Assembly (NCBI RefSeq): GCF_002113885.1
Contig: NW_018406089.1
Span: 198,351 to 262,350 of the forward strand
Direction of reading: 5' to 3'
Source of the DNA: Mizuhopecten yessoensis
Taxonomy: Eukaryota
DNA length: 64,000 nt
The position numbers and the translations under genes are program-made. Under the pieces are notes generated by a model. That model searched no databases and was not told where the DNA came from. It saw nothing but the letters and a program-made list of their open reading frames with translations. Position 1 is the first letter of the stretch. Every line of letters begins with the position of its first letter. Shown here piece by piece: positions 2,488 through 49,099 of this stretch.

Positions 2488-2516
2488 CACGGACTTAGAT
2501 CCAATCTAATTCCGTG
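2488..2516. mobile_element. 29-bp palindromic TIR-only element or excision footprint, 7-bp TSD AGTAAAC
   Basis: agtaaac|cacggacttagat cca atctaattccgtg|agtaaac; related copies at 14628 and 49070. Confidence 0.85.
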
Positions 2517-3185
2517 AGTAAACTAAATAACCCAAAATTTCCCCTTCTTAACATAAAATAAAACATCCAAATAATTTAAGCCGTTCTTTTTCCAAATAAC
2601 TAAAACAACATAGGGGAGCCACAACTGAATCCTTACTCAGGCACTGATAGTGCTGTGTAAACCTGGTTTTCATTTAGAATTGATTTTTTATCTGCATCCG
2701 GCTATTTCTTGCTGGTACCACGACACTATGAAATAGTATGCATGAATTCAGTTGCAAACATGATTGTCTTGTAAGAAATAGTACCATTAAGGAAAAGATC
2801 AGTTAACAAAAACCTGCAACGAAGACGTCTTATTCTCATTTTGGTTGACATTTGACAAATATTACGGTCGCGACATTCGTTACTATCGACATGACCGAGG
2901 GATAATCCATGGTCATATCGTTCCCCCTGTATTTGTATTTACGACTTAGTGCTGGGGATTTTGAGTGGAGATACAAGTGTATAGTTTTCGAACATGATAA
3001 TATTTGAAACATGTGTCCCATGCCTACCAATCGAGTATCTCGTGTCCCAATAATATACGTGCATACTCTTTTGTTATATACATTTCGGAACCAGACCTAG
3101 ACATTTGGTCTATATTGTAGTCCTACAAGTTTCTTTTCAGTCGGAATTAAGCGTCAATTTTACATTTATAGTTGTCGGAGAATAA

Positions 3186-3737
3186 AACAAGAGGCCCATG
3201 GGCCGAACGGTCACCTGAGTTCTACAGTATTTATTTTTGTTGTTGAAATATGTACCAATTTGAGTACAAAATAGTTAAGCATACCATTAACTTAAGTTTG
3301 TCAGATCCATGGGCTGATCATTTCTAGACTGAGTTTCAGTTAAATCGGCCTATTAGAACTTGTTTTTAAGTTTGAAATAGTTTTTTTCAAAATGGCGGCC
3401 GTATCGGCCATATTGGATTTCTGATCGACCCGAAAAATAACAGCACTTTGTCAGGACCATTAGTCGATCATTCCTACAAAGTTTCAGTTCAATCGGCCCA
3501 GTAGAACTTGACTTTAAGTTTGAAATAGTTTTTCAAAATGGCGGCCGTGGCGGCCATATTGGATTTCTGATGGACCCGAAAAATAACGACACTTGGTCAA
3601 GGAGATGTCAGTAACCTTCCCATGAAATATTACTGAAATCCCTTTGCCAGTATTTCAGCTTAAGTTGAAAATGTAAAATGTCAACGGACGACGACGAATA
3701 GCAATAGGTCACTTGAGCTAAAGCTCAGGTGACCTAA
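3186..3737 (+). mobile_element. HINE (non-autonomous Helentron-type) element with two core repeats
   Basis: AACAAGAGGCCC..GGTCACCTG start, duplicated ~145-bp core, (gac)n tract, 3' hairpin GGTCACTTGAGC..GCTCAGGTGACC before an A-run. Confidence 0.75.
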
Positions 3738-6379
3738 AAAAAATGCACATAAGTAATCAAGCGCTATTTCAGCAGTAAGAGACTGCGTTTGTGGATATTC
3801 ATATTTGTTAGATAAGTATTATAAATCACAATAAAATAATCTGCACCCACCGAGCGTCGTAACCGTTTGCACAGTCAAAGACTTTACCGTAACCATGGAA
3901 ACCGAGATAATTATGCGCTTCCGCCTATGTTGGTTTATTTTAACGAATTAATTTTATCACTCTTTAAATGAGTGGCTAATGAAAATACGGAGATTACGGA
4001 TATGGCGTGGTTTTCAAAACACTTAAATAAAGCAAAATACAGGTTGGCCATTACTTGTAGTCTACATTCTAATCGTTTGATCAAATGATGGCTCAAGACA
4101 AGTTTGTTATTCAGAGTTTCATTTTGTTGCATTCTCCATTACCGTTAGTGTAAATATGTCAACTGTACAACTGCAACCACTACGCAATAGCGAGTATTTC
4201 TATGTGGACCTTTCATATATCAAAAAAGTATAATGACACCTCGGCGGATTTTTTTTCTTTCAAACATATATTTTTTTAAATTAAACAGTAGAATCTTGTT
4301 TAATTATGTCCATATTTTCATGAAATGGACATGCACTGATAAGACGGCGGAGTTACCTCGATCCCCTGTCAGCAACGAGGTCTAGAGTAATACTTTATAC
4401 CGATGTAACAATACCGGTTGTTAGCCGTAGAACGTTACATCCTAGGATATAGGATTGTATCCTGGCCAAAGCTAAATACGCCTATAGTGACTCAATGTCC
4501 ATTTGTAAAAATACGAATTTCGTCACTTACCGTATATCAGCGATTCGTGTTTTTAAGGTTGGTTGGTTCTTACTTTCAAAACGTGATATCCGCTTTTAAG
4601 CACGGACCGAGTTTGATTCTGAGCTTAATTTAACTTTTAAAACGACCTCCAAATACTTGCATATTATATTGCTTATACTTGGGTGCAGCCCTGGTAAAAT
4701 TCGTATGGTATTGCAAGTTGCAAAACATTATTGAACGATTTTAATACACAGAGTATTACCGGTAAATTCTTATACATCAGGAGTAAAAATATCTCCACAG
4801 TACACCAAACACGATAGACATATGTAAATAGTTAGAAATAACGAAGGTGATAGTTATTTCGGACTAAATGTGATTGAAATAATTTGTACTAAAATAGTCA
4901 ACACCTATATTGTATTGCTCGTTAGAATGGTTGCACGTGTAAATTGTACCACGTGATGTTGATGTAACCACGTGCATCAAACTTCAACACCAGTGGCTGT
5001 TCACTGTCGCGTCGAGGCTAGTAGTTCAGTACCGAAAGTAGCACAATGAAGGTGACAAATACCTAATGCAGTAATTAAGCTTCCCCGAGGGCACAGGTGT
5101 CCCGGGTAAGCTGAACATTCTATCCATTGTCGAACATAAAAAGGTTACTGGCCGTCCTTAATGTACAGCCTTATCCATATAGATTGTCACATAGCTACAG
5201 ATATCGAGTCATATATTAATCTGTTATAAAAGCCACAAACGAGCAAACATGCTACAGTTTTTGGCACTAATCGTGTAACAGGGTTACAAGTTTATACGGA
5301 ATATACCTGTACAGCCAATCACACACAAAGGTACTAAAAAATCAACCAACCATGACTTCAGCTAACGTATATATATGTACGACGGATTGACACAGAACGT
5401 GCCTTCCTCTTTTACAGACTAGAACAACAGTAGAATAGAACGTTATGTAAAAATGATGTCTATATATCGCCTATAAAGAGGTACATACCTGAATTAACAC
5501 GTATAATCTCCCGGCGACACAGGCTGTTTATTTGAGAACAAGGACAGTTTTACCACCTCTCACTGGCTTTCCCTACGTAAATGAGCTTAGACAGCCTTAC
5601 AGTGGGTTTTAACTCCCGGGTACGTACCCTGGGGCCATGTTTCTATTTAGCGCGAGATCGGAGCTCGCTGTCGGCCTCTACTCGGTAACAAACAGTGGCG
5701 TGGTAGGAAAATGATGCGCCCGAGGCGCTTCTCCATAGCAACGGAACAGATGCTGCGAGAGGCGCCGTCGTGCGCTAATATCAAACTCAATTTAGATAGA
5801 AAAAGTGGAAGTGGGGATAACGGAGAGGACTGGTATTTGACCTTTCAACTTCTCCGATATATTTTATCTACATACAATTTACACGTTGGAAACTATATCA
5901 TATATATATATATCAGTCAAAGTCTGATACACAATATTTAGAATATGTATGTCTTTGCATATAATAAATAATCTATATAACAAAATTCCTGCATAAATAT
6001 TTCATCTCATACACAGTGTTGGTGCACAATCAAACGCTTGTTTTCTAAATAACGTCGGGTTTAACAGAATGCAGGTCTGTCTCATCCCACAGCGAGAACT
6101 GCTTAAATCGAACACTGAATAAACCAATTGTGAAGACACTTGCCTAAACCAACCCCTCTGTAATATTTTTTTTTTATCAGACATTACATTGGCCCCATAG
6201 CATCTTCTTGTCCGCAATCCTGGCATTCCGAATCAGTTAATGTTTAGAAAGGTTTCACTGTACAAAACACTTTCCGGTTTGTTGTCTGTGTATTTACTTG
6301 AAAATTACCGGTTTTACCTTAAACCGATCCATGATGCTGTAGAAACGTGCTGCTATACAAACACACAAGAACTTATGAA

Positions 6380-7506
6380 TAGGGCTGTAACGATACACCG
6401 CGGTGCACCGAAAACCGGGCTAAATTGCTTCGGTTCGGTTCACGGTATTTTTTTTCCGTGTTTCGGTTCGGTTCGGTTTTTAGTATTACCTGACTTCCGG
6501 AATTTAACCATACAGGTGCAATGTAAATATTTATTCTCCAGCGTCACCTACGATGATAATAAAGGTTTTGAAGGGTTTGACATGGTTAATGTGGAAAAAC
6601 TTCGGTGTAACATAATATGTTACTTTCCAATGAACGGCTTTGTGCCCTACGCAAACAGGTTAATATCGGCGGACCGTGGCGCACATGTCGTCTGCAGGTG
6701 AGGCCGAATTGAACATTAACATTAACATTGATACGTTTTGAGCCGATTGCTTTCTTCAAACTATATATCGATGATTTAATCATAAACTAAACCGTAGCTA
6801 AAATATATCGACTGTGACAGTAAATATATCGAATGACGACTTGAAACCTGTAGCAAATCACATGCAATTCTTAATGAAATACCTGGCCTTTTTACCTGAT
6901 AATCTCCGTGTAAATGTACAGCGTCTTATGCCATAAATGAAGTTTATAATCTCTGATATCATTTGCCAATCACATTTGCTGACAAAAATAATTTTAAAAT
7001 TATCTTTTTGGTGCTTAAATCCCGATTAATTAAAAGTTTCACCCTTTTTTACCTTTATTAAAACCTGTACAGGTAAATACTGAAGCAATTTTAGAATTGA
7101 AAACGTTAATGTAAACTAGAGACAATAACGAACAATTTTCATATAACTTTTATTCACATATATTTGAAAAATCAAGTAAATTAATTTATATTTCAATAAT
7201 TAATTCAGCAGTGGTGCCCCTTTACATAGAAATCAATGTAGCAGCATTAAGGGTTAAAAAAAACTCCCGCTTCCTTTCGCTCGCCTGTTTGGCAGCATTT
7301 TGGATTCCTGCTAAATGTCCCCGATGGAAAATCACTCTCCACTTGCCGCATATGTTTCGTAGATTTAAGTCAGGGAACACATCAAACATGGCGACACATT
7401 TGAAGAGGAAGCATAACATTTCTGTATCGTATCAAAATGTATCGTATCGTGGGTAGATATCGTGATACGTATCGTATCGTGGCATAGGTGTATCGTTACA
7501 GCCCTA
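6380..7506 (+). mobile_element. Non-autonomous hAT derivative with a BED zinc-finger remnant
   Basis: 20-bp TIR TAGGGCTGTAACGATACACC, perfect 8-bp TSD CTTATGAA (6372-6379 / 7507-7514), subterminal (CGGTT)n and (TATCG)n repeats, and a frameshifted BED finger SPVWQHFGF..CRIC..SGNTSNMATHLKRKH at about 7278-7425. Confidence 0.92.
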
Positions 7507-9074
7507 CTTATGAACGCTCTCGAAGTAATGAGTGAATATTTTAAACGAGTTTAACACTACATTGTTTGAGTGATTTACTTTTGTAATTATTTCTTGTAAC
7601 TACCAGACACGTGGAATCTTTGTGATGAAGCCAAGTGTGGCAGTTGACAACATTTCCCCAACATCAATTTTTCACGTGCCCGCCCCGTGTTACAGACACA
7701 TCTATGCCCCGAGGCTGCACGAGAAGTCACAAGATATATTTGACCCGAAGGGGAAGTTTCTATATTCCAAGGGCGATTTTCCAGTCTATGCCCGAAAGCG
7801 TACGATCTGGAGCACAGGTAATTACATATTAGAATATAGGCATAGGGTATGTTGTGTCTATTACCTGTGATCTGGAGAGTTATCGACTCGACTTTGTCGG
7901 CAAGATCCTCCATATATTTATTGTAGTGTTAGACAATTTTATTTCCTCCGGGATTCGACTTGCATTTCGATACACTACCTTATTTTTCATCTTTTGAAGT
8001 GACAAATGAAACACGACACAAACATATCTTATCGATAAAGCTTTTGAAACCAAAAAATATTGCTACTTTCATTGACCACTCCTGCCCTGCATTCGAACTC
8101 GTAAAGGGGGCTAACTCTAACGTAAATATCAGGATAATATTTACAAATATCCTAACGAGGCTCCATCCTTTCACAATTTACCAACATATCACATAATGGC
8201 TTCGTAACTAAACACTGTGTGTAGAGATGATTTTAGGAAAATCTTAGCATTCCGATAGATTGGAAAAGGTGAGAATATAGGATTGCACTGAATAGTTATG
8301 AAAAATAGGAAATATCGAGCATCACATAGAAAGTATATTGTATTAAATTATTATTATTATTATTATTATTTATGAAGATAGATTATGTTATACATACACT
8401 ACTTGGGGTGCCGGTTTTGTCGGGTCATCTTAAAAGTGCAACCTCATTCATCTATCACACCACAAGATAGCATTCTCTATTACTTACCGCATTCAAACTT
8501 CAGTTTAAACTCGTTAAAGCTGGTAGCTCCAGTAGGTGGTTGCAGGTTGTACTAGGTTATCGACGGAAGGGGAGCAACTCTTGTACAGGTTACCATTTAA
8601 CTAAAATGTTGAGTAGACACCGATCGATTTCCACACATTAGGAAGTTCTATTGGTATGTCCTAAGTGATTCCGGAAAGGTGAATAAAAACAGTGCATCGG
8701 TCAAAGTTTTACAAGACCATCGTAACAAAATCTTCGATAACGTGTTTTGTATTACGACACCAATTTGCAGGCGTTTTTTTTTTGTAGCTTACAGTTCATG
8801 TTGAAAATATCTTAAGCATAGTTCACATGGACTTGCTTCTCATGTTCTATTCCAAGATGAACCTGCGTACCGAATCTCGTTATTTCCAGGTGAAATATAG
8901 AAGATAGGTATTGGACAAATTTTTTCAAATGTTAAGGTTCAAGCTAAAGCCTAGATCACAGCGACCTCTTTCTAGCATTTAATCAACAGTTGGGAAGGGG
9001 AGTCCTGCAAATGCAGTGCTTGTTCTTGATCGGTGTTAAAATTACTATGCAGCTTTTTATGTTTATTTCCAGCT

Positions 9075-10812: not shown

Positions 10813-13800
10813 CTACCTTCTCATTCCTGGGGGCGGTCCTGAAGAAAAAATAATTGCACATAAGGACCTTTTCTTCAACATTATTTTCTATAGAAGACTG
10901 CTATCCGTTATTCTTGATGAACCAAGTTAATGATGAGCAAATCCGAACAGTGATATTTTCCCAGCTGAATTTGGGACCTTATAAAGATAATTTCAGCTGT
11001 ATTTTCTCAAAATAATTGCAGAAATCACTTTATTTTCCTCAAGTCATGTTTTCTGTGATGTGTTCCCAAAGTGACAAGGCACAGGCCCCAGTAAAAAAAA
11101 AGACAGAAAAAATTACTGCCTAAATATTAGTTGTTTATTTGCAAGATTTGTTACAAACACAATCATTTATAATTAATTAATCAGAAAATGACTAATCTAA
11201 CCACTAGGTACTAAATATGTTATTATAACAAAAGCTAAAATACGGTCATCATGATTTACTTACCCCTCATCATACCAGGAGGTGGTCCTCTCATACCTGG
11301 CCCACCTCGTCCTCCCATCGGTGGTCCTCGCATACCCATCATGCCTGGTGGTGGACCCCCTCGCCCTGGGGGACCTGGGGACAGAATAATCAAATTATAT
11401 GCAATACTGGTTTTTGCAAACTGTTTTCAAACAGGTGGAGTACTTTTTATGTAAAAGGGTTGGATGGGTTGAATCAAGATGCTGATCCTCACCATCTAAG
11501 GATAGTTTTATGGGATGCTGGTGAAAACCCACCACTTAGCATAGGAGATGTCCTTTGACAGTTTTTTCACAAGGGTTTAGGATGGATTTTCAGCCTTTCC
11601 ATGATCAGGTATTACAGTTTATTAATTACAAACAATAAAATTATTAGCTAATGTTCTTTTGCTGTACATGAGCTACAGAAAGTTATGGTACTTTGGTGTC
11701 TTGTGTGCATTTCACAGGGACTTGATGGATGTGATTTTTTTCCTTTTTTCTTCTTACTTAGATATATTTTGACAATGTTTTAATCAAAAGTGGCAAATCT
11801 CTGAAAGAATAATAATGCTGCAGTTTCAATCCTGTGTAATACTTGCATGAACCTGATGTTTTGCTATCAATTTTAACGTTTATTCATAAACTGTTCAACT
11901 CTGAAATACATGATGCAGTGCTCCACCTGGATTTTTTCTCCCATGAATTTCATGAGAGGGGGATATTTTGAATTTTCAAGCGAAACGAAACAGTGAGCGC
12001 CAAAAATTTTGTTTGAACATGTACGTTTTGGATAAATTTATTCCTATATTTTCTTTGCATTTTAGTCTCCATTTTTTCTGCATATTATGTTTTAACCAAT
12101 CAGAAAATGCCTTAAGGATGTCTGGCTACACAACATTAAATGTTTTAAAACTCTAAAATCTGAAAGGATACAAAATATTAACAAAATCACAAACCACATT
12201 TGACTAGATTTTTTTAATTTTCCATGGCTACATCTATTTCTTAAAAATAACTCTCGATTTAGTATTGTGCCACCCCTTCAGGGCTTAGATTGCTGTTTCA
12301 TTCAAGAATTTGTAGGATATATTTAGCTTAAATTGTCAGAATACTGTCCTAAATCTATTTATTCTACGTTAGGCATATTGAAGTCTGGATCATCCTAACA
12401 CTTCACTTGACTTACTGTACTTCCACTTTGAATTCGCATGAGCAACGATATCATTAGTTTTAATGTTTAAATTGTGTAAACCCAGAAAATATGCAATTCA
12501 AAGACAGACATTCAATCCCATTTAGAGAAATTCAGTGCAATATTTTTTGAAAAAGCAGGGTAAATGTTGTGGCCCAGAGTGATCCCTGATAATGTTAAGT
12601 TTATTCAACCGACCTCTCATTTGTGGTGGTGCAGACATTGTGCTGCGGTTAGGGTTCATCATCTGTGAGCCAGGCCCGCCAACGCCTCTGACTGGACCCT
12701 GTAGACCCTGGTGAGGTCCTCCACCCATTCCACGTCCTGCTGCCCGACCAATACCAGCGCCTGGTCCAGCACCAGAGAGGGGCACTCGAGCAATACCTTC
12801 CTGTATAAGATATTCAATGGATTATTTTTACCATATCAATATCAATTCTATACAAATTTAACATAGCATACAAACAGTATATATTGTGTCTGATTTTTTT
12901 TTTTCAACAAATGCCTTTGCTACTTGATAAATTAATAGATGACATGATTATTTAATCACGATGTACTCGGAAATCCTGGACTCATTTACAATTTTGGAGA
13001 ACCATCCTGTAAGAATTAATTACAGGACAATGGGACTCATAAATATTTTTTAAATGATATGCACATGCAAAAAACTATCATTAAATAACTAAAGATAACA
13101 TGTCAAAAAGTGTTAAACAAAAAACAGTGTCATTCTTTCAAAATTGTGCCCAACCTGTCATTAAATAGAGACAGAAAATGTATAGGTCAAATATAAGAAA
13201 TTAAGAATATTGATTTTAGGGTGCAAGATACATAATCGTCTGAATGTTTTGTTGTTGCATACCCTTTTCCTTAATTTGTTTTTTACTTACTTACTGCCCA
13301 TTACGCCCAGTGGCATGTGGGGCAGCAACGAAATTTGTTTTTTACATACTGTTTATTATACTTTTTTATCTGAACAAACAAACTTCTGTACCTCAGCTGG
13401 AGGTGGTCCCTCTACAGTCATGGAGACCAGGTGTTCCCCTCGCAGTAACACCAGACCTAGAACCCTCTTCTCCTCCTTCTCACCACTTTTACTGCTCTTT
13501 GGCTTTACTTTCCTGAACTCGTCGCAATCTCCGAGGATGAGATTCATGTGTTTGTCAAATGCTTTGAATGTTCCAATAAATGTGCGGCTATCCTGCAGGG
13601 TGCATCGCATCCTGTAGTTGATGTGCTGCAGCATCTTCGAACTCCTACCCACCGTCTAGGAAAATGCAAATTACCATAATTTCTAACACTGTGTTACTTC
13701 GCAGAAATACATGATTTTCTTAATACAATATAAAGCGATACATATCAATTAATATCAATCCGTGTTTTAGTAGAATTGCTTTATTTGCAAACTCATCTTT

Positions 13801-14052
13801 AACTGTTCTATGTGGGAAAGAACCATGTGGAATAATGACAAGAAGACACAGAAAAACGAATCAAATATAAACTTTCATTCTCATTATGTCGCTAACTTGC
13901 AGAACGTATATGAAACGTCGCTTGCTTAGGTTTGTTTACAAACGCGACCCGGCATCCACTTTGTTTACATTCAGTGTATATTAATATACAAAAATGACAC
14001 ATGTATAACAAAGTTAAAATAAAAATGAATGCATGAAATTCAAACTTACCAT
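10813..14052 (-). CDS. SNRPB: snRNP core protein SmB/B' (196 aa)
   Basis: Exons 14050-14052 (ATG only), 13392-13655, 12614-12800, 11264-11374, 10813-10838; GT-AG introns with consistent phases. Sm1/Sm2 motifs ([35 protein letters not shown]) and a PPPGMR/RG-rich tail. AATAAA at about 10363. Confidence 0.97.
13287..13331 (-). mobile_element. 45-bp 5'-truncated retroelement 3' end (RTE-like) with 14-bp TSD
   Basis: Perfect TSD AATTTGTTTTTTAC (13273-13286 / 13332-13345). Minus strand ends GGGCAGTAAGTAAG. The RTE assignment comes from the (TAAG)n tail and is inference. Confidence 0.7.
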
Positions 14053-14627
14053 TTTGGCTGCTTTAAATGACGGCCGATGCAGTGGATTAAAAAATTGATG
14101 CAGGGGCACCTGCTATTAAACAATGGCGGAAACGCTAAAGTACGCGGTAAGAAGAGTCAGTGTAAGGGAGGTAATATAGTATATTGTTTGCGTCCCTTTG
14201 AATAGATGTATTAAGGAATTATTTTTTAAAAAAATCAATAAATATTTTTGTTTTATAAGAAAATGCACAAAAGGAATGTTTTATACAGGTGGCATTATCG
14301 TTTGTATATGATGCTATACTTTAGCAAACAAGAGATGTATATATTTCGTAATATATACGTCTCTGAGCAAACTGTTATTCCGTCACTAAAGTAGGGACCC
14401 CAGTTGAAATAAACCTTAGTTTAAACAGAGACGTATATATTACTGTTTTAATAGACATTTTTTGCTAGGATTACCGGGATTTTTGTCTAATCAATACTCT
14501 TATAAAGCAAAATGTGATATTTGATTAAATATGTGATAGTTTTGTTTTTTTGTTTTTTTTACTGAACTCATTTATTATGGATTTTTTTTATGTCATTATA
14601 CCTGATAACGATAATTATATATTGTGC

Positions 14628-14659
14628 CACGGAATAAGATTAGATTATCTAAGTGCGTG
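14628..14659. mobile_element. 32-bp palindromic TIR-only element or footprint, 7-bp TSD ATTGTGC
   Basis: attgtgc|cacggaataagat tagatt atctaagtgcgtg|attgtgc. Confidence 0.8.
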
Positions 14660-16793
14660 ATTGTGCATACTTGTCAACCTTTTTTACAATTTTCATGGGA
14701 GAGATTCTGCGTGCTCAAAATTAAAAACCGCATTTAAAATAAAATGGATAGATATAACCCCCAACCCCACTAACCCGCCCCCACTCCCACAATTTCTCCG
14801 AAAAGGCGAACTGAAAATATAACTATAATATCACTTTAGCCATTTTCATTTACATGATGACATCTAAACTTAGTATGGCTCAATAGATATGTTTCCGCTG
14901 ATTTGAAGAATCTGAAAGGTACACCGGCACAAACCACGAGGAAACGGGGCTATTAATGGTATTAATGGTATCGATAACACCATCAGAGTTACGCATGCCC
15001 GTGAACCGGCGTTACTGTACCGTGAACGGGACAATTTCGGTATTTTGGCGAATATTTGGGCTTAAACCAATATTGGCAGAAAATATGCTAGTTGAAATAT
15101 TTTAGAGTCAACGAGGGTTCTGATTAAATTTCTTCTTCAAACTAGCATTCGTTTCGATAAAATTATATAGACTTTTGAAAATGATATCCAAATCAGGAAA
15201 GTCTTGTTTTGGTAATTATTCTTACCACGGACCAGGGACGTATCGTCGGCCAAGAGTCAAGACCTCGTATCTCGTTTTTTGCAACTTTTCAGGAGAGACA
15301 AAAAATTATCTCTGTTTTTAACTAATTGAGACAGGAATGTAATTTTTTGCAAATTGCTAGCAATAAACATTGCAAGTAAATGGATAAAAAAACATTTGAA
15401 CTTTTTTGTTCACTTGACCTACTTTTACGAGTTACGAGTTTTTGCATCTAAAATGTCTACATTTTTCAAAAGATAAGAGGTTTCTGTTTTCTTTCAAAAT
15501 TCCAATAATGAATTAGGGAAGTTTTAATTGGTACCAGAAGTATTGGATATTATTATACATAATTAGTCAAAATGTTTTTGTCACTGAAATTGCTTTAAAA
15601 ATCACAAGACATTTGTTTTGAAATTAACTTTTAATAACAAAAAATATTAAAACATTTCATGAATGGTCAGACTAGATTCTTAACAGTCAACTGGAATGCG
15701 ATAAAACATTGCTGTACTTATCCGCAGATAATCCCCCCACTTCAATAATTGACTTTATCAATAAAATAAAATGATTATACTTGTACATGTATATTGCTTG
15801 CGTTTTGTTTTTATAATTTTGGGGTGTGGGCTTTGCACGAAACAACTAGAAAACTGACAATTACTATAGATAAGCAAAACGAAAAGGCCAAAATTTGGAG
15901 GGATTATTTGCAACTAAATACGAAAACATTAACTGTCATTGTAAATAAAAATGTGAACAAATACGAACTATAAGTGTAGACAATAATTACTTTTCGTAAT
16001 TTGCAAATCAAAAACTAAAAAACTACTTGCTGAAATTACTACTTCTGCAAGAAGATATTGAAATATCCAATAATACAATTATCATTATAATAAAACATTA
16101 ACAAATCATTATGAACCAAGTAGACAATAACAATTTTGTAATTTGCAAATCAAACACCCAAAAAATACCTGCAGAAGTTGCTACTGTACAATTGGCACGA
16201 CATGAATAAGGAAACTCAATTCAAAAATGATTTAAATACAGTAAATATAATGCATGGCTCTAATAAATGGTAATCGTAATGCACAGTACATTGTAAAAGA
16301 AATAGTTACTAGAAATCAATTCACAGTTTAAAAAGGTATTTAAAAAATATGACTAGAATAATCAATTACATTTGAGCTACTTGCATAATAAAAAATAAAA
16401 CCTATTTGTACACTACAACATGTACATGTATTCAAATTAGGATAAATAGGACGTCAAAAATCAAATTACAATATGCAATGGAACAAATATTTCGCTAATT
16501 ATATAGTCATTTTAAAATTTGGAACATGTTCACCTAGACCATGTAAGGCAACAACAAACATTAGAAACTAATGAAACTATCAACTCTGAAAGAATCGGTT
16601 AACTCATGAAAATATCAACTCTGAAAAAATCAGTTAATTTTAAACATAACACCTCAGATGTCCTCATTCAAAACACTTTAGATTTAGATAATCCCCATAA
16701 GTCTATCCCTTATGTTGTCATTGCGTACAAGCTGTTGCCTATTAGCAGTGTTTATCAATTTAATTCAGTTCAACTCAGCAGAATTGCGAAATA

Positions 16794-19463
16794 CTAATCT
16801 GAGTGAGGCAACGCATCATAGAATCCATGGTAGTCCTTGGGCATGACCTTTTTGAGTTCTTGTAGATGTTTATACTTGCTCTTTTTAATGTTGACTGGGC
16901 AACTGTACAGCTGTGATGTCACCACCCGTGGCTCCTGCCTTCGTGAACGTCGTGGTAGTTCCTGGAACTCTTCGTCATACATCAACTTGTATTCAATTTT
17001 CCCGTCCGGAGTGTACTTGAGTACTCGGATGTGGGTGACGCAGGGATCTCCAACTCTTACACCTGGACGGATTGACGAATAATACTGAACTTCTGAGTAG
17101 TTGACAAAAAACGAGTGATCCAGATATTTAACCTTGTAAGGATTCACTTGACGAGCAGACTCTATAGCTTCTACATAATTGGACGGAATGTAAATTGCCT
17201 TGTCACGGAGACTGCGTTCAATAGTGCTGTGTATGCTGTCACACTCCATCTGTGTGTGTCCTTTCTCCAGAATCTTTTGTAGTATGGTTTTATTGCTGGT
17301 CACCGACAAGTGAAGTAATGCATTGGCCAAGGTGACATTCCTATTTTGGTATGTACAACCGTCACTGTAGATTGTGACATGGTCAGTGTCACCCAATTCG
17401 TTTAGGATGTAGTCACACACACATGAAGCAAAACTGTTTGCTCCGAGTTCCCCTTCTCCCTCATGCCAGAAATAACACACAACATTGTGCGTTGTCAAGT
17501 CATACATAGTAAAGTTATGACATGCTAGTTTGGTCTTGTAGTACATGGCACTCGCTTTTAGACTCGGTGATAACAACACAGCCTGTAAATCTAACGTTAT
17601 GACCTTACCATGTCCGGCATTTGCAGACTCTTTATCCTTCTGTTTTTCGTTTCTCGCACTGGTTTTCTTCTCAATATGTTTATTATATTCCGACTCTTCC
17701 AAATTACCAGCTTCAAACGCACAGTATGTATCACACTGATCCTTTTTGGGATGAAACAAACATTTTTTTTTCACTGATGACACTAGTGAATACTGTGATT
17801 GATAACGACTCTTCGTTTTTTTCTTCACATTGTTCAGTGTATAAGTCATAAAGTTGTTTCACTGATCTGATGCAAGGCTCTAGATACAACTTTGATGTAC
17901 TGGCCCTACAATAATGTGATGGAAGTTTTGGTAAGGAGTCTAGAAATTCATGTGCAAACTCCCTTTTTCGGACGTTGTCAATCTTCTGTCGTCCAGGGGC
18001 ACTGTAGGTGGAGGGAGAGGCATGCATACCAGCCGCTCTGTCAGGGTTTTCATCTAGCGATTGATTAATCCAATTATGAACTGTCCACTCCCCAAGTCCA
18101 AGTGTTGACAGAAACATGTTTTTACAAACCCGATACCGACCCTCGCTCTTTTTGAGGTGATAAGAATAGCTCATATTCTTCCTAGATTTATGTGTTTCAT
18201 TCTGTTTTTCCTCACAATCCACCATTGTGGAAACGTAGATTTTCTTCTGGGACCAGTCCATTTCCCAGAATCCGGAAAAGATGGTCTGCCGGTCCTCGTC
18301 TGTAAAGATTCTACAATGGCGTAGCTTACTTTTGTTACAGAGTTTGGAACAGCAACGTGGTCCTATTTTCCTGGGCTCTTTTGTTAATTCAGTTCGTGTC
18401 CCATCGTTTGTTTTTTTAACACTTTTATAAGACTGGCCTTTCATTCTGGAATCCTTTTTAATATTGCGTTGCCATGTGTTGGGGTCGGCCATTCCTCTTT
18501 TGGCTTTTTATCTGTTAGACGGTCCGGGACTTGTGTTCTCTGAGTTTTCCTCGTTTGCTTCAGTTCGTGCATTATTGTTTACTGGCTGTTCCTCACTGGA
18601 ATCGGAATCATCAAGATCGGCTGAATTCTCGTGACAGTCTAAGTTTATGGGCGGGGTCCAGTCTGGGTCGACATCAGAATTATCTAGAAAATCTACAAGG
18701 TCAAAGTTGTTTTCCAAATTGTAAGTTTCGATGACTTCCTCGACTGTTGTTTCGACGACTTCTTCATTGACGTATGTTCCGACGACTTCCTGACTGACCG
18801 TTGTTCCGACGACTTCCTGACTGACCGTTGTTCCGACGACTTCCTGACNNNNNNNNNNNNNNNNNNNNNNNNNNNNNNNNNNNNNNNNNNNNNNNNNNNN
18901 NNNNNNNNNNNNNNNNNNNNNNNNNNNNNNNNNNNNNNNNNNNNNNNNNNNNNNNNNNNNNNNNNNNNNNNNNNNNNNNNNNNNNNNNNNNNNNNNNNNN
19001 NNNNNNNNNNNNNNNNNNNNNNNNNNNNNNNNNNNNNNNNNNNNNNNNNNNNNNNNNNNNNNNNNNNNNNNNNNNNNNNNNNNNNNNNNNNNNNNNNNNN
19101 NNNNNNNNNNNNNNNNNNNNNNNNNNNNNNNNNNNNNNNNNNNNNNNNNNNNNNNNNNNNNNNNNNNNNNNNNNNNNNNNNNNNNNNNNNNNNNNNNNNN
19201 NNNNNNNNNNNNNNNNNNNNNNNNNNNNNNNNNNNNNNNNNNNNNNNNNNNNNNNNNNNNNNNNNNNNNNNNNNNNNNNNNNNNNNNNNNNNNNNNNNNN
19301 NNNNNNNNNNNNNNNNNNNNNNNNNNNNNNNNNNNNNNNNNNNNNNNNNNNNNNNNNNNNNNNNNNNNNNNNNNNNNCTGTTGCGAAGTAATTGTGTCAC
19401 GTTGTGCGTATCTGATGCGAGCAGATTGTCCTGGCTGCTGCGGAGCCATTCATTGGATGTCAT
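16794..19463 (-). pseudogene. Sola1-type DDD transposase, disrupted
   Basis: Motifs SHYCR, PKKDQCD, DLQAVL, YYKTKL..HNFT.YDL, WHEGEG, YSDGCTYQNRN, GHTQMECDSIHSTIE. In-frame TAA at 18508-18510 and a frameshift at the A9 run (17763-17771). The N-terminus holds a 27-bp coding repeat (QEVVGTTVS)n broken by an assembly gap, so the start (19463 or 19449) is uncertain. Confidence 0.85.
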
Positions 19464-20562: not shown

Positions 20563-21362
20563 AGGTAATACGAGGAAAATGTCATGTGGTTTTTCAACAT
20601 GTTCTGATTGGACTAGAGATAAGTGTTTTATACACATTATGAAGCAAGGCGGGAAGAGTATATTGGTGCAAAAAAATCATTTTGGCCAAAAACCGAGATA
20701 CGAGGTCTTGACTCTTGGCCGACGGTATAATCTAATTCCATGTTTTTACCTTTAAATTGTCAATGTAACGAAAATCAGCAGCCATTCAGTAAAGCCTAAT
20801 ACAGTCATGACAAGTATTATCAAATGAAAACTCTATACATGACAGAACTTCTTTGCATTGAATGACATTTTCTTGTGCCATTTTCCCCACTAGTGTCCCG
20901 TTTTGGGTACTGACTACTGTCCCGATTTGGTAGTCAAGCCGGAAAAATGAGTTTTTGGCAGTACGGGGATCCTGACTCTCGGATATTTAACGGACCAAAA
21001 GCAACATAGCTAATTTTGTTCACTTTTTAACAAATCGTTTTAAAATATTGATACGATTGTTATCACTCGTGTAACGGATTGACTAAGTACCTTCCCCACG
21101 AATGTCTGTCCGTAACATATGCGGGCCATATGATGTCAATCACCGTGCTGTTTTTTTTAGCCCAGGTAAATTGTAACGAATTTTAATCGATTAAACGAAT
21201 GTAGGCTACCTGTTCTTCTACATTATTGATACAAGGGGGAACAAAATCGATATATTTACAGACAATACACAAAGCATATAAGTAGACCGCTCTACCTCTA
21301 GATATAGATGCCTGTTCTTATCGATTTCCTCGCCTGCCGTTTCTATAGCGACACGTACGCTA

Positions 21363-24400: not shown

Positions 24401-27400
24401 ACACAATGAAACAGTTTGTTGTAAATGTTTCAGAAAAGCGTCAGACCAGGGACATCCTCATGCAGCGTACAATCTTGCTGTGGCACATCTCAAGGGATAC
24501 AAAACTGACCTGAAACCAGGGTAAGCTCAATACAGCTGTACCATGGAAAGTTTACAAACAAATATTGTTTATAGAAAAATGGTTTGAATATTTAAACTTA
24601 TTTCCACTATTAAGTTATTATCCATGAAGTTTTAGCCCACCATCATCAGATGGTTGGCTATTCAAATTGCCCACCATCTGTCTTTAAACAATTCTCGTTA
24701 TTGCTATTTCTCAAGAAGTACTGAACATGTTTCATTTTGTGACTGATTGGGGAAAAAACAAGATGGCCACCAGTTAGCCATTTTGGATTTTGACAGTTCA
24801 AATTTGTTATCGCTATTTCTCAAGAAGTAAGCAATGACCTCACTTTGAAAAGACTCTCAAACCCAGCTGTATGAATTTTAAATAAAAACAAGAGGCTCAA
24901 TGGGCCTGCATCGCTCACCTGGTACAAATCTCACACTTGTAACCTTAAAAGTGATCTAAAATAAAGCTACAGGCAAAATATCAGTATTTATGATAAAAAT
25001 TCATTCAAAAGACCCTGTTAATTTTTTTTAAAACATTTCACCCTTGTGATTGAAAGTCGAACAAAGTCATTATGTTGGACACATTGTATAGCCTTTCATC
25101 TCAGGATGCAACTTGCAAAGTATAAACATCCTGGGACCCATGGTTATTCATAAGAGGTTGTTTAAAGATTTTAAACAAATTTGACCCCTGTGACCTTGAA
25201 TATAAGTCAAAGTCATTCACTTTAACAAACATAGTAGTCCTTGATCCCAGCATATGCTACTNNNNNNNNNNNNNNNNNNNNNNNNNNNNNNNNNNNNNNN
25301 NNNNNNNNNNNNNNNNNNNNNNNNNNNNNNNNNNNNNNNNNNNNNNNNNNNNNNNNNNNNNNNNNNNNNNNNNNNNNNNNNNNNNNNNNNNNNNNNNNNN
25401 NNNNNNNNNNNNNNNNNNNNNNNNNNNNNNNNNNNNNNNNNNNNNNNNNNNNNNNNNNNNNNNNNNNNACCCCTGTGACCTTGAATATAATTGAAGGTCA
25501 TTCATTTGAACAAACTTGGTAGCCCTTCACCCAAGCATGCTACTGGCCAAATATCATCTCCCTGGGCAGTTGTGTTATTGAGAAGAAGATGTTTAAAGTT
25601 TTTAACATATTTGACCCCTGTGACCTTGAAAATTAATGAAGGTCAATAATTTTAACAAACTTTGTAGCCCTTCATCCAAGTTTGCTTCTGGCCAAATATC
25701 GACACCCTAGGCCTTTCGGTTATTAAGAAGAAGTCGTTTAAAGTAAAATATTGACGCCAGACGCCGGCCGGCCGACGAACGCCGCGGCATAAGCTCACTT
25801 GGCACTTTGAGCTAGGTGAGCTAAAAATCCCACAAGACACATTGAGATAAAGAGCTAAAAAGGGAAATAAAGAGAAAAAATTAAACTTACATAGAACTAC
25901 TGAAGTTTCACCAATGGTAGGTACCTAATTCCCTCTGGGATCTCTTGTTTTTAATCTTAAGGTTTTTCCATGAACAATTTTCAGATTTTCTGTTAATGAT
26001 CTTGCTCAGGGCTTATACCTGAGGTTTACTTAAAAAGTAATTCCTGTTCAGAATCGTCCTAGTCTTATTCAAATTAAGTTTGCTTAACATCGGCGTGGTG
26101 GAAGTTAATAATGTTTAAAGTCCTAACTCTCTACTTCAAAAGAGAGCCACATTATTCATTTATAGCATTGTTTCCCCTTCATCTAGTGATCTGTGTCAAA
26201 TTGTGTCTTTTAAACTTTTATTTTTCATTTGTTTACATTGCCCTTCATAGAAACTATCTCTGAGAAAACATTGCCTTGATTAGATATGATTTTATGTATA
26301 AATGCAAATTGTGTTTTGATTTTTTTTTAAATGTGTTAAATTACTAAATTGTTCATAAACCATATTTGTATATAATTTTAGTACATGTATCATAATTAGC
26401 TGTTCAATGAACACCAGACATCTGAAGCATGTTTTCAGTCAACTTTATATCTTATTTGAAATGTTTTTAGCTCACCTGCCCGAAGGGCAAGTGAGCTTAT
26501 GTTATGGTGCAGCGTCCGTCGTCTGTCTGTCCAGCGTCAACATTTTGCTTTAAACAACTTCTTTTCGGTCACCAAAAGGCCTAGAAAGGTGATATTTGGC
26601 CAGTAGCATGCTGGGATCAAGGGCTACCAAGTTTGTTCAAATGAATCGCCTTGACCCACTTTCAAGGTCACAGTGGTCATATATGTTAAAATCTTCAAAC
26701 AACTTCTTCTCAATAACCAAAAGGCCAAGGGTACTGATATTGGGCCTGTAGCAGGCTGGGATAAAGGGCCACTAAGTTTGTTCAAATGAATGACCTTGAC
26801 CCACTTTCAAGGTCACTGGTGTCAGATGTCTTAAATCTTCAAACAACTTCTTCTCAATAATCAAAAGGCCAAGGGTACTGATATTGGGCCTGTAGCATGC
26901 TGGGATGAAGGGCTACCAAGTTTGTTCAAATGAATGACCTTGACCAACTTTCAAGGTCACATGGGTCAAATGTCGAAAAATCTTCGAGCAACTTCTTTTC
27001 AATGAGCAAAAGGGCCAGGGTACTGAAATTGGGCCTGTAGCATGCTGGGATGAAGGGCTACCAAGTTTGTTCAAATGAATGACCTTGACCAACTTTCAAG
27101 GTCACATGGGTCAAATGTCGAAAAATCTTCAAGCAACTTCTTTTCAATGAGCAAAAGGGCCAGGGTACTGAAATTGGGCCTGTAGTATGCTGGGATGAAG
27201 GACTACCATGTTAGTTCAAATGAATGACCTTGATCCACTTTCAACCTAATGTCCTTGTTCGACAATCAAGGTCAGAGGCGTCATGTTTAAATCTTTTAAT
27301 AGGTTCTTATGAAATCTTAACATTACAAGTGTTAGATTAATAACAGGTGAGCGATGCAGGCCCATTGGGCCTCTTGTTTAGCTCACCTGGTCCGAAGGAC

Positions 27401-37332: not shown

Positions 37333-38249
37333 TCTAAATATAACGCGTGTTGTCGACTGCTAAATTCCTCACGTCTGTTGCCAATGACAGTTCTCGAGTG
37401 GATTCCGCATGCGTGACACGAAATGTAATATCCGGTTTAAACTAAATTTGAAAACGGCAATCGGACCACGCTCGTCCATTTCCGTGAAATGACATCATTT
37501 GGTGGAAACAATCTAATTAGATCTACGAATCGCTTCCTGTTTATGCGATAGGAAGGTCCTCTTTTAATTAATTTGAGGAAGAGAAAACACATGAATATGT
37601 TGGTCGATATTTTGTTGAAGCTACTGAAATTTTCAAGATTTTTTCCGCGGCGGCATTTTCCTACTAACTTAGCCGTGGCCATAAGGCCTGTATGTTGTTC
37701 TGAATTAATCTATTGAAGCAAAATTTATACATGTTTCAGTGTCACTAAAATATTGAAAAAACACCCCATTGATTATGATAGTCGATCTGTACGTACCTTA
37801 GCTAGTTATACTATTCTGTGACCAGTGGCGGATTTTTAGCCTGAATCTGGGAAACCCCATCACTTTAATAGATTTAATGAATATGGCTATATTTACAGTA
37901 TTATATTAACAATACCTAATATCTCAGCAGTTCAAAAATTCATATTCAATTGGTTTGATATCTATTCCGTGCATTATCGCTGCTAGAAATTATTTAATCG
38001 TTAATTAATATTGTTTCCTGTATTCATAAATGCCGTTTTGGGGAAATTTGGACTGTTTTCTGCCATAGCTCTTTAAGTATATATTTTAGCTTGTCTTGTA
38101 TTTTGTAAAAAGTATAACGTAAATGTAATGTATACGTATTGATATATTTGACTGTAAACTCTTACTATTTAGTTATTGTTATAGTTTAGTTTAAACATAT
38201 TTTATTGCCATGCAAATGGATTGGGCATAAGTTATTAAACTTATATTAN

Positions 38250-45283: not shown

Positions 45284-46326
45284 AATTGTCACTTTAAATA
45301 ATTTCGCAAACTCTCGATAGAGACATTCGAATCTTAACATATGACCATCTAGTCGTACCATCTTTCAATATTAATTGAACATTTGGCCTTACCAATGCTT
45401 CTGATGAGTGGTATGGTAGCAATTACTAGGCATAATATAAAGTGTATGGGAGTATGCAGTAGTTTGAATAATGTTTGAAAACTACATTCGTGGTAATCCG
45501 AAGCTTGCATTTGTTTGATGAAGATCAATATTTATGTGAGAAGCCACAAGTCTGACGTACATTTAAAACTATCAATTAATTTTACCAACATTAAAATGAT
45601 CATAATTGGTATTATGTGTTTAAATAATATTTCTATTAAATGTCCAAAAATGTCATACATCACAAAAGCAGAGAATTGAATGAAAATAATGAAATCTATT
45701 TTGTCAACTTAACAGGTGTTTTATCTGTTGCCAGATAGGATGATCTACTTAATATCTGTGATTCTTTCACGTTACATTATTTTACCTACACACTTCAGAA
45801 TTAAACTGTTATATTTGTTATATTAAAGCCTTTAATTTTTGTAGACATGTTTTTTTTAATTGTTTACAATTAGTTCAATACAAAATGATTTACACCATTG
45901 ATAACCTCTTCATTTATTAATGTTTCAGTAGACAACAGATATGTATACCACATACCTTGTCTTTGAACAAAAAATATTGCTAAGACTGTATAATTTTCGT
46001 GGGCTTGCAGACGTATCTCGCGTTGTGCATTGAATTAGCGATTTTGGTTTAAGATAGTTCATACTCAAAACTTTTCACGAGTTTTAAACTATCAGATTGA
46101 AGTCTTTCCATAATATCGCTAAAATTGCAGGGCAGCAAACATTACAATATATATCCTAGAAATATTCTAGGTTTTATATTTAATTGTTTGACTCCTGCTC
46201 TTACGAAAGATCACAATGGACAATGGGGTCTGTTTCGCTTACCTTTAGAAAATGGCATGCATGAATTTAAAAAATAAAATAATGGCCAAAGCTCTGACGT
46301 TATAAACCAAGTTACTGATGTATTTC

Positions 46327-46391
46327 CGTCCTTAAATGACCATAGCTGTTGATAGGCCATTAAAAAATACTAAACCAAACCAAACCAAACC
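46327..46391 (+). mobile_element. 5'-truncated SINE/LINE 3' end with (CAAAC)n tail
   Basis: 14-bp TSD TACTGrTGTATTTC (46313-46326 / 46392-46405, 1 mismatch). Confidence 0.7.
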
Positions 46392-48639
46392 TACTGGTGT
46401 ATTTCTACGCATGGTATATCTACACCATAGTTTCAATATCTTGGTGCGATATAAACCATCATATGTCTACAAGGATTACAGGAAATTCGGATCAAACTAG
46501 GTGACCAGCAATGACTCGAAAACTACGTACAATCACATCAGTATTCGGATTTCCTAACGCACGTGTACAACTACATCCGATGGGTTTGAATGTCCGAGTA
46601 ACAGCGAAAGAAGAGTAAAGCTGAGAGACTACAGACTGAAAGATAGACACACGTATTCAAGTACAAAGTTGGTTAATTTCGAAAATCAACTAGAACGTTT
46701 CTAGCTACAATGACCACAAATCTTGCTGTTATCTTAGTTGGCGTAGAATCTGACTTCTCTGATTAGTACTGTTCTGGGGAAGTTCAAACGAACCATTTAC
46801 GACCCTTGGTATCATATTAACCCATTTCAAGTATTCTCCTTTTCCTATCTTAACTGTGAAACATCAAAGTACATATCCGCTGATATTACTGCTTCCTAAA
46901 CATGATTCTCTGTTAATTCTTTGTAATACAAACTAGCTAGACATTGATTTTACTAATAAAATCCAGGGTCATGAACTTTTGAATGGTAGTTTTGAAAAAA
47001 GACAGCATACGACAAGATCAATTATTCTGCATTAGTAAAAATTGCGTCTGATAAGCCAAGACCTTAACAGGGACCGCTTTCCATAAGCACTACATCCCTG
47101 CAGGTGGGGGATCGGGAAACAATACACCTGCTGTTACACATGGCATATACCGTAAGAGGCGACTAATGTGGGAACCGCCTGTAGAATTGGGGATTTGCTT
47201 TTGCGCCTTCTACTTGGGGATCAAAAGCGACCAAAATAAATCTGCTGCACCCATTGCAACATTTGAGATATTTATCTTTCTTTCTACTTCTAACTACCTT
47301 TTATTTCCTAGCGCCTAGCTTGCCATATTGATCGAATATTGTTGACGTGTTGCTAATCTTTCTATTTTTAAAAGTCAACGAAGCAGAAATTACTTGAAGA
47401 TGTAAAATAGAGATGATAACTATACTTCAAACTAGAGAGTGCTGTATATAAAAAAATATGTATTTAAATTATTGACAGCTGTTGAGGAAAGTATTAAGCG
47501 GTCTAAATGCGGTGTTTTCGATCTTTGAGTAATGCTACTAGCGGTGTTCTAAGTAGTATGTTCGGTTCCATTTAAAGGGATAATAGTTCTATTAACATCT
47601 TATTAGTGAAAACAATACCTTACTTATCTCAATGTCAGGCAACACCAAACACATGCAGTTAGGAAACTTAATCAGTAGTTGTCTGTCGTGTATGAATTCT
47701 GACACAGTGGATCCTGTAGCGCGAATTCTGCAATATGAAAACGCAAAACGTTGACACAGCGAAATTAGATCACTTTACTATAACAAGTGTACATAACTGG
47801 ATAGACATTAATCTCTGCAAATGCTGGAGATGGAATCAGATATACTGTTGGGTTAAGCATGCTCTGCTCCTCGTATTGTATACCCGTTATGGGAATGATA
47901 AATTCGGAGAATATGACGTTTTGGGAAACACTTACTGGGCTATGTTCGATGAAAAACATATCATCCATATTCATTTTCAGGCGATACATGACTGAACTAA
48001 GACAGTTCTGGTGTTATCACTGCATAGGGAAGTTTGGTGCATTAACGGAAGTTAATGATGAGGCAACCACACATCATCCGGACATTGCTGTTCAATATTG
48101 GACGAAACAACAGGGAAGTTACAGTACCAATCAAAACTTCTTCCGTCCTGGCGTAAATAATTTGTATTTGACGCAGAGAGTAATACATGTTGGAACTTCA
48201 AACATTATTGTATTCCACTCTTTACAACACAATGTATTGATTCTGCAGATTTTATTGTTATATAACTGGAACTGTCAATTTATGACTAATAGAATCTTCC
48301 CCTACCTTGAGGGTGTGCCAGAGAAATCTCCAACCCGAGGGGTGATGCTTTTTGGTTGTCTAACCCGAGGCTCTCCCTCGGCTACAACTTTGTGACAATA
48401 GACGAAGAAACTGACAAAATCAGGACACATTACACGAAACTGAACCGAGGTGTAAACAAATACACGTGTTTACAATGTATATGCAAACGTATAGAGTAGT
48501 ATTAAACTTATGCAACTTTGTAAGAAAGTATCGAGATATGTAAGAAGAAAAATACGATTATGTATCACTTCTCAATCGTCCCGCTCAACAACTTTAAGCC
48601 GCAAAATATATTGCCATATTACACGTATAACCAGCGTGA

Positions 48640-48835
48640 CACATGGACCTGAGAATTTGTTACAGCTATATTTGGACCTAAACTAAGGTTTTAGGGGTTA
48701 AGATCGACTTTCGGTAAAATCATTGGGGTGTCATTTTTACCAAAAGTCGATCTAAACCCCTAAAACGTGTAAAATTACTCTGAACACCTTAGTTAAGGTC
48801 CAAATATAGCTGTAACAAATTCTCAGGTCCCTGTG
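48640..48835. mobile_element. 196-bp MITE with ~49-bp TIRs and 8-bp TSD
   Basis: TIR CACAkGGACCTGAGAATTTGTTACAGCTATATTTGGACCT; TSD CAGCGTGA/CAGCGCGA; second internal inverted repeat. Confidence 0.8.
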
Positions 48836-49069
48836 CAGCGCGAGGGTGGCGGTGTCACAGATGATGCCACATGTCCCACAATTCAGCAAGTCATCAAAGG
48901 TACAAGTGTTGGATTGTGTACAGCAGATCAGAGGTCACTTGGATATCTCCAAAAGAAAAGCTCAAATTCTACAAGGAATCCCACTTTCTTATCACGATGA
49001 TGAAGGGGGATACTAACTAATACTCCTTAAACAAGCACGGGATGTATCACCTTAAGCACTCTGTGTGGA

Positions 49070-49099
49070 CACGGAATTAGATTGTTATCTAAGTCCGTG
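49070..49099. mobile_element. 30-bp palindromic TIR-only element or footprint, 7-bp TSD GTGTGGA
   Basis: gtgtgga|cacggaattagat tgtt atctaagtccgtg|gtgtgga. Confidence 0.85.

Follow-up and report, generated by a model that had tools for sequence, protein, structure and literature searches.

How did three short near-palindromes, each lying between two copies of a different 7-bp sequence, arise within 64,000 nucleotides of the scallop Mizuhopecten yessoensis (contig NW_018406089.1, positions 198,351 to 262,350; this whole stretch is referred to below as the window)? We consider, with a probability of about 85%, that each palindrome is a donor-site scar, left after a cut-and-paste transposon of the P superfamily had inserted once and been excised once. 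A preliminary description of the window had proposed excision scars, and this reading is now supported by the junctions, by a step in retained length at 17 nt, by the recovery of full elements and by an end architecture linked to P-type transposases.

Sites in the window and in the genome

All three palindromes are present as described, and each is flanked by a perfect 7-bp target site duplication (TSD, given here without strand) that differs in sequence from the other two. Scar 1 (29 bp, 2488..2516, minus strand) lies between copies of AGTAAAC at 2481..2487 and 2517..2523; read on the minus strand, it comprises 14 nt of one transposon end (the A end), a GG filler and 13 nt of the other (the C end). 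Scar 2 (32 bp, 14628..14659, plus strand), between copies of ATTGTGC at 14621..14627 and 14660..14666, is a direct join of 17 nt of the A end to 15 nt of the C end, and, with a point mutation in each of its arms, it probably predates the other two. Scar 3 (30 bp, 49070..49099, plus strand), between copies of GTGTGGA at 49063..49069 and 49100..49106, keeps 14 nt of the A end and 16 nt of the C end, or 13 and 17 with a shared T, and its junction recurs elsewhere in the genome (C41:31753 and C111:234942, among others). Of the retained lengths given previously, 17 + 15 at site 2 stands, and those at sites 1 and 3 (16 + 13 and 15 + 15) are replaced by the values above.

A blind scan of the window for palindromes of 22-45 bp with perfect 7-bp repeats on either side recovered two of the three sites and no others, and found no match in five shuffled windows. 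The 13-mer end, allowing at most 2 mismatches, occurs 9 times in the window against 2.3 expected, a count reached by none of 100 shuffles. The assembly is interrupted by gaps at 18849-19377 and at 25262-25468 and by a single N at 38249; these interruptions lie between the sites and come no closer than 4 kb to any of them. The three sites are independent features, and the claims made here therefore need no continuity across the gaps. A Pfam scan of the reading frames of the window gave only a weak, sub-threshold match to DUF7869.

Across the 987.6 Mb genome, 1019 exact scar sites were found, against none for the reversed-pattern control. Three sites in 64 kb overstates the abundance: exact sites occur about once per Mb genome-wide, and the window with its three is therefore a cluster. 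Clustering is also seen among the first 50 listed sites, with 7 pairs at most 10 kb apart where about 0.5 would be expected. Some scars are secondary copies riding inside other repeats (L003/L004; L016/L020/L035; L038/L042), so that 1019 is an upper bound on the number of independent events. Among 55 distinct scars, 34 have a perfect 7-bp TSD and 13 a TSD with a single mismatch; position 2 is T in 81% and position 6 is A in 66%. The scars at L037 are present in contigs from four individuals and four studies. Population contigs revealed neither an empty nor a full allele at any scar site; the history of insertion and then excision is therefore inferred and was not itself observed. Scars of two families accumulate in the same short regions.

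Parent elements, retained lengths and junctions

Longer elements with the same ends had been predicted, and such elements exist in the genome. Their full-length copies give the A end as CACGGAATTAGATTAGA followed by GGG and the C end as CACGGACTTAGATAACA followed by GGG, which replace the sequences GATTGG(A) and GATAA that had been put forward as the ends. Both have the tip CACGG and, over about 29 nt, are imperfect inverted repeats of one another, each with 17 terminal bases and then GGGA(AA/TT)GGCAAC. In all, 71 full-type ends were counted, and paired ends define elements of 1.9-6.3 kb, the youngest copies of which are 99% identical; copies at this level of identity lie at C5166:1607805-1611221, C5434:176856-180253 and C5442:275020-278397. 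The predicted elements exist with their 7-bp TSD, but the P-like frame expected of them does not appear in the paired full-length copies, in which no P-like match was found at E <= 1; these copies are therefore non-autonomous. No long reading frames were found in the 1.4 kb adjoining the C end. The motif GGGATTGGCAAC is present in all full ends and absent from the scars. At L058 a deletion derivative lies between copies of the 7-bp TSD GTTTTAC; of one end it keeps 12-14 nt, which abut 1.4 kb from the other side.

Measured against these ends, the scars (26-40 bp) show the ceiling near 17 nt that had been foreseen: 50 of 55 keep at most 17 nt per end, and 17 is the mode. Exactly 17 nt are kept at the A end in 25 scars and more in 3, and at the C end in 24 and more in 2. 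The five exceptional scars keep 19-22 nt that match the next bases of the parent, the extensions being GG, GGG, CC or CCC. A complete end has the other end within the next 30 nt at nearly every occurrence; a 74-bp form occurs at L059.

The junctions, formed by microhomology or short filler, are as heterogeneous as had been expected, with 25 types among the first 50 listed sites, and they vary centrally while the tips stay intact. The 27-bp form accounts for 18 of these 50 sites (36%) because of a 3-nt TTA microhomology at the join; forms of 35, 29 and 31 bp also recur. The commonest long scar, of 35 bp, consists of 17 nt, one extra T and 17 nt, and the extra T is absent from the parent. A reading of this T as base 18 of the A end was rejected: full ends have G there, and the T is therefore an addition made at repair. 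A further candidate, an A end running on into a third TTAGA repeat, was also discarded, as all 7 matches were scars with slipped duplications.

The proposed sequence of events would run as follows. On insertion, 7 bp of the target, roughly G-T-N-N-N-A-C by preference, would be duplicated. On excision, the transposase would cut, at both ends, the 3' strand at the very tip of the element and the 5' strand 17 nt further in, leaving the flanking DNA with two 17-nt 3' overhangs, one from A and one from C. End-joining would then trim and unite the overhangs through 0-3 nt of microhomology or a few filler bases, and the product would be a near-palindrome of 26-40 bp between two copies of the TSD. This is the cleavage chemistry that we infer for the CACGGA family. 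The conserved motif GGGA(AA/TT)GGCAAC, which directly follows base 17, probably contributes to recognition by the transposase. The frequent addition of a single T is not explained by the excision model.

Link to P-type transposases

Transposases of the P superfamily have a TNP-like RNase H fold that is interrupted by a GTP-binding insertion domain (PF21787, PF21788, PF21789), and GTP is their cofactor for pairing, cleavage and strand transfer. The elements have inverted termini starting with CA, and internal sites at which the transposase binds. The CACGGA family has CA-initial inverted termini and a 7-bp TSD, a 17-nt donor stagger as read from its repair products, and the motif GGGA(AA/TT)GGCAAC that it shares with P-like elements. 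TSDs in the superfamily measure 7-8 bp, rarely 9 (PMC3698922).

The assignment to P-like elements, already suggested in the preliminary description, is strengthened by transposase genes flanked by the same end architecture. At L076, in the same genome, the end CAGAGACGTATAAAGCCA with GAGATTGGAAAC lies about 330 nt upstream of, and is directed into, a frame carrying PF21787, PF21788 and PF21789. This end belongs to a sister scar family, CAGAGACGT, and not to the CACGGA family, with which it shares its architecture. Only positions 4711-7008 were used at L076; a 1059-aa frame was rejected as intact since it crosses an N gap at 7009-7878. In marine metagenome contigs, 12 of 13 ends composed of CA, 15-19 nt and GGGATTGG(A/C)AAC border P-like genes and are directed into them, and 11 contigs combine the same end architecture with a frame for a transposase of the domain composition given above. 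For the metagenome loci only long repeats and motif-anchored ends were used, a loose inverted-repeat finder having proved uninformative there (52 matches in reversed controls against 51 in real sequence). The 13-mer at L126 is identical to the scallop C end at 13 of 13 bases, and a complete P-like element, with a terminal inverted repeat of 35 nt and a 7-bp TSD, is present at L085.

For the CACGGA family itself, an end of this type at C2226:8506 is directed, as judged by coordinates only, at a P-like frame of 629 + 249 aa that lies at a distance of 2.8 kb, at about 11290-13913; chance alone would give about 0.014 such cases. The element on C2226 is thus a candidate autonomous copy, and its P-like frame would be the transposase of the family. 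In P-like proteins of the scallop genome, the GTP-binding insertion domain is present at the level of sequence.

Rival readings, known systems and wider meaning

Three other origins were weighed. The palindromes might themselves be mobile, as micro-MITEs of 27-35 bp that are moved by a transposase and gain a new 7-bp TSD at each landing. They resemble MITEs in being short, numerous and TSD-flanked, with inverted termini, and the 27-, 35-, 29- and 31-bp junction forms do recur amid unrelated flanks; a different TSD at each site is predicted by both models. MITE families, however, spread as units with a homogeneous interior and scattered point mutations between copies, whereas the palindromes, all of 26-40 bp, differ centrally from site to site with unchanged tips and lack the subterminal motif of full ends. 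Every form can be written as the two parental ends cut to at most 17 nt plus microhomology or filler, and the recurrent ones are those that simple joining predicts (27 bp with the TTA overlap, 34 and 35 bp with the full 17 + 17). Identical copies with identical flanks are accounted for by carrier repeats. We regard independent mobility of the palindromes as very improbable. Interrupted gap repair from the sister chromatid would create internal deletions of any size with no defined 17-nt stagger. Derivatives of this kind do occur, at L058 and L059, and the five scars with 19-22 templated nucleotides are in line with it. It predicts a broad and smooth range of lengths, but the counts peak at exactly 17 and then collapse, and a complete end is almost always closely followed by its partner; as a general origin of the scars it is hardly credible.

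A transposon outside the P superfamily, whose transposase also cuts far inside its ends, would leave similar scars, and the paired full-length CACGGA copies indeed contain no detectable P-like frame. We also know of no established cleavage chemistry for several eukaryotic superfamilies. Against this stand the CA tip, about 17 nt and GGGATTGG(A/C)AAC found beside P-type transposase genes in both scallop and metagenome, the CACGGA end directed at a P-like frame on C2226, and a 7-bp TSD like that of 1360 and Galileo (PMC3698922). We therefore judge a non-P source unlikely and retain excision of a P-type element as the origin of the scars.

One of the closest known parallels is the P element of Drosophila melanogaster, a cut-and-paste element that hops locally. 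Its transposase staggers the donor cut by 17 nt, an unusually long distance, and leaves 3' overhangs (PMC7776569, PMC10983969). After end-joining, the donor sites of the P element retain up to about 17 nt of each inverted repeat, and the Pfam families of its transposase, which has an RNase H fold with a GTP-binding domain inserted in it, also occur in the scallop genome. The scallop family differs in its 7-bp TSD (8 in the P element), in its distinguishable ends with an imperfect repeat of about 29 nt (perfect, 31 bp), in a conserved motif starting at base 18, and in the single extra T very often gained by full-length joins. Its scars are fixed germline relics, hundreds to thousands of them, whereas those of the P element come from laboratory revertants. 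The Drosophila elements 1360 (Hoppel/ProtoP) and Galileo share the superfamily and the 7-bp TSD but are insect elements, and the literature searched describes no genome-wide scar record for them. Zebrafish Pdre2 and THAP9 offer a P-like system outside insects, with short terminal and subterminal repeats and a transposase that excises elements (PMC10983969); Pdre2 differs in its 8-bp TSD, its other ends, its few copies and a stagger that was not read from natural scars. The kind of phenomenon reported here is already known, while the host is new and the scale notable; in the literature, as partially covered, no report was found of genome-wide P-type scars or of such scars in bivalves.

Taken jointly, the scars may form an extensive natural archive of P-type transposition beyond the insects, comprising an ancestral stagger, a cut at the edge of a motif, repair data and landing zones, a reading to which we give slightly less than even odds. 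Within it, the 17-nt staggered cut may be an ancestral trait of the superfamily; the scars suggest a cut placed exactly at the edge of GGGATTGG(A/C)AAC, a conserved subterminal motif common to P elements of marine invertebrates, and this motif could be the site that positions the cut. Thousands of end-joining outcomes from the mollusc germline, with their preferred addition of a single T, may likewise be preserved. The regions in which two families pile up could be favoured for landing, for instance as open chromatin or replication origins.

As the scars bear the signature of a 17-nt stagger, sequence alone suffices to read the mechanism in an animal that lacks assays, and a stagger readable in a scallop argues for its old age within the P superfamily. 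The junctions are a ready source of data on how double-strand breaks are repaired in the germline of a bivalve, and the motif next to the cut is a concrete target for biochemists and structural biologists who study P and THAP9 transposases. Repeat annotation undercounts cut-and-paste activity because such elements leave no copy behind; the few dozen full copies, set against about a thousand scars, indicate how much of the activity of this family is hidden. In annotation, palindromes of 26-40 bp between 7-bp repeats should be recorded as scars and not as new mobile elements.

Scar sites in the window and in the assembly

P-element footprints and their 17-nt stagger are textbook matter for Drosophila; in the partial library searched, we found no account of such scars fixed across a genome, nor of the stagger in molluscs. 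The present analysis adds the parent family with its sizes, a correction of the end sequences, the motif where the cut falls and a sequence-level link to P-type transposase genes.

The three palindromes of the preliminary description, each said to be flanked by a perfect 7-bp direct repeat not shared with the others, were borne out at all three positions: 2488-2516 (target-site duplication, TSD, AGTAAAC; composition 14 + GG + 13), 14628-14659 (ATTGTGC; 17 + 15) and 49070-49099 (GTGTGGA; 14 + 16). A blind scan of the window for short palindromes between 7-bp repeats recovered two of the three and no others, and the same scan on shuffled windows returned no sites. The 13-nt end motif has nine matches (at most two mismatches) in the window against 2.3 expected, a count reached in 0 of 100 shuffles. 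Assembly gaps at 18849-19377 and 25262-25468 and a single N at 38249 separate the sites and come no closer than 4 kb to any of them; because the sites are independent features, continuity across the gaps is irrelevant. An unpaired end-like 13-mer, CATGGAATTAGAT, at 20730-20742 (minus strand), with no partner and no TSD, is probably a chance match or a one-sided remnant.

The window also holds two satellites, at 56422-59796 (66-bp unit, 51 copies, 93% matches) and 60489-61585 (47-bp unit, 23 copies); long ORFs at 56342-59813 were rejected as artefacts of the 66-bp array. A run of reading frames at 16794-19449 (minus strand), adjoining an assembly gap and giving one weak, sub-threshold DUF7869 match (E 0.0015), may be the remnant of another mobile element.

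In the whole assembly (987.6 Mb, 82,659 contigs), of which the window is C2762:198351-262350, the pattern formed by one end, 0-12 bases and an inverted end occurs at 1019 exact sites, and its reversed control at none. Independent events can number no more than this, since some scars were copied inside other repeats or duplications (loci L003/L004, 786 bp at 95.5% identity; L016/L020/L035, 3 kb at 100%; L038/L042). Among the matches listed, nearly all long-form A or C ends are followed, no more than about 30 nt further on, by the opposite end, so that most genomic copies of the ends are scars and not elements.

Parent elements, retained ends and junctions

In the parent family, whose members have these CACGGA tips, the C end recurrently continues as CACGGACTTAGATAACA, then GGGATTGGCAAC, then a common interior. 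The full-type-end pattern yielded 71 ends genome-wide, the A end being CACGGAATTAGATTAGA followed by GGGAAAGGCAAC, with AATAGA occurring as a variant. From these readings of full copies, both ends consist of 17 nt plus a conserved motif. A 1434-bp deletion derivative (L058, C189:107396-108829; TSD GTTTTAC) has related copies at 84 to 99% identity, most of which continue past its A-end fusion point. The longer elements expected to share these ends do exist: distances between paired ends gave eleven sizes, namely 1912 bp (contig C5410), 2356 bp (C5461), 3378 bp (C5442), 3398 bp (C5434), 3417 bp (C5166), 3561 bp (C3117), 4391 bp (C370), 4692 bp (C5425), 5042 bp (C5376), 5628 bp (C4099) and 6288 bp (C1444). 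None of the eleven contains a P-like match at E <= 1, and no long reading frame was found in the 1.4 kb adjoining the C end; the sized copies are non-autonomous.

Retained lengths were scored on the true parent ends in 55 distinct scars, drawn from the window and from loci whose sequence was retrieved. Of these, 34 have a perfect TSD and another 13 a TSD with a single mismatch; the target approximates G-T-N-N-N-A-C, position 2 being T in 81%. The anticipated ceiling near 17 nt was confirmed, 50 of the 55 scars keeping at most 17 nt of each end; exactly 17 nt are kept of the A end in 25 and of the C end in 24, although part of the sample was chosen for one complete end, so that in that part only the other end's length distribution is unbiased. 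The five exceptions keep 19, 19, 20, 19 and 22 nt, and their extra bases (GG, GG, GGG, CC and CCC(AT)) are the parent's own, as they would be if the end had been extended briefly on a template before it was joined. At the junctions, 31 scars have an overlap of 0-3 nt, 21 a filler of 1-5 nt and three a longer filler. The 27-bp form, the most frequent at 18 of the first 50 sites listed, joins 15 + 15 nt that overlap by TTA, and at 34 bp the two ends meet at exactly 17 + 17; a 35-bp form, also frequent, reads 17 + T + 17, with a preferred T that is absent from the parent and that a cut-and-join model does not account for. A 74-bp form at L059:1501-1574 joins 15 nt of the A end, 42 nt of partly palindromic filler and 17 nt of the C end.

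This pattern of lengths and junctions is as predicted if a transposase were to make a 17-nt staggered cut and end-joining then repaired the donor site. Such a cut is a known peculiarity of P transposase (PMC7776569, PMC10983969), and the scallop scars, here read from repair products, match the retention pattern of the Drosophila enzyme. The step at 17 nt speaks against deletions made by gap repair alone. The palindromes could instead be a mobile micro-MITE, a reading disfavoured by their exact fit to trimmed parent ends, the lack of the subterminal motif and the heterogeneous junctions that had been foreseen (25 different ones among the first 50 sites listed, 26-38 bp). Excision by a non-P transposase is likewise disfavoured, the end architecture being common to the CACGGA family and P-like elements.

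Relation to P-type transposase genes

Bivalve genomes are generally rich in P-like proteins, and the scallop genome has about 25-38 P-like loci, of which the sequence was read at one (L076, C5526:65000-74999). Its frame carries PF21787, PF21788 and PF21789 and is broken by an N gap at 7009-7878. About 330 nt upstream, oriented into the frame, lies an end reading CAGAGACGTATAAAGCCA then GAGATTGGAAAC (L076:8189-8218, minus strand; C5526 near 73200); a second end was not found within this 10-kb locus. The tip CAGAGACGTATAAAGCCA is the parent end of a sister scar family, the CAGAGACGT family, and has the same architecture as the CACGGA family.

When metagenome contigs were searched with aligned P-like proteins, 80 loci came up. 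Thirteen ends with the structure CA + 15-19 nt + GGGATTGG(A/C)AAC occur on 11 of these contigs, and 12 of them flank a P-like gene and face inward. The P-like element on one contig (L085) is complete, its inverted repeat measuring 35 nt and its TSD 7 bp; another contig (L126, JGIcombinedJ30088_10016440) has a 13-mer, AGGGATTGGCAAC, that matches the scallop C end at every base. At L126:121-150, about 100 bp from the P-like element's end, a 30-bp palindrome (CATAGACACACG...) between 7-bp repeats CAGCGAC appears from its sequence to be a scar of this type left in a different organism.

A P transposase had been expected in longer CACGGA-ended elements; those sized lack a P-like match, and the candidate comes from contig C2226. 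There, a plus-strand end of the CACGGA type (C2226:8506) is oriented toward a P-like frame of 629 + 249 aa that begins some 2.8 kb downstream, a configuration with a chance expectation of about 0.014. This element, placed by coordinates alone, is likely an autonomous CACGGA copy.

Clustering, copied scars and alleles

Seven pairs of scars lie less than 10 kb apart among the first 50 sites listed, against about 0.5 expected; the clusters are three sites in 2.3 kb (C101), three in 7.3 kb (C107) and two 118 bp apart (C262). Among about 60 distinct 3-kb loci, a second CACGGA scar is present in eight and a CAGAGACGT-family scar in five, the latter with 7-bp TSDs and less than 1.5 kb from CACGGA scars (L023:1188-1223, L038:1240-1280, L048:1386-1413, L062:458-485 and L064:1347-1389). 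At L072:1528-1601, two CACGGA scars in opposite orientation have the middle copy of the TSD GTCGAAC in common, and the same target was therefore hit twice. P elements are known to hop locally (PMC7776569); the co-clustering of the two scar families points to preferred landing regions as well, the two being inseparable here.

At C1616:893353-893497, at least three tandem 41-bp units each hold an identical 34-bp scar and its 7-bp TSD, a small array produced by amplification of a scar. Loci L046, L047, L055 and L075 each contain, at about 725-2240, a member of a 1.5-kb repeat family with 92-95% identity. Midway along the repeat stand a C end and then a degraded partner, which look like an old scar duplicated together with the repeat around it.

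At locus L037, scar 1 is spanned by contigs of four individuals from four studies and scar 3 by one, and no empty or full allele was seen at these scars in those contigs; L037 contains highly repeated stretches, and most other rows of the allele comparison are therefore uninformative. The reference TACGG at L037:293 is CACGG in the contigs of all four other individuals, the T in the scar tip being a private or polymorphic mutation.
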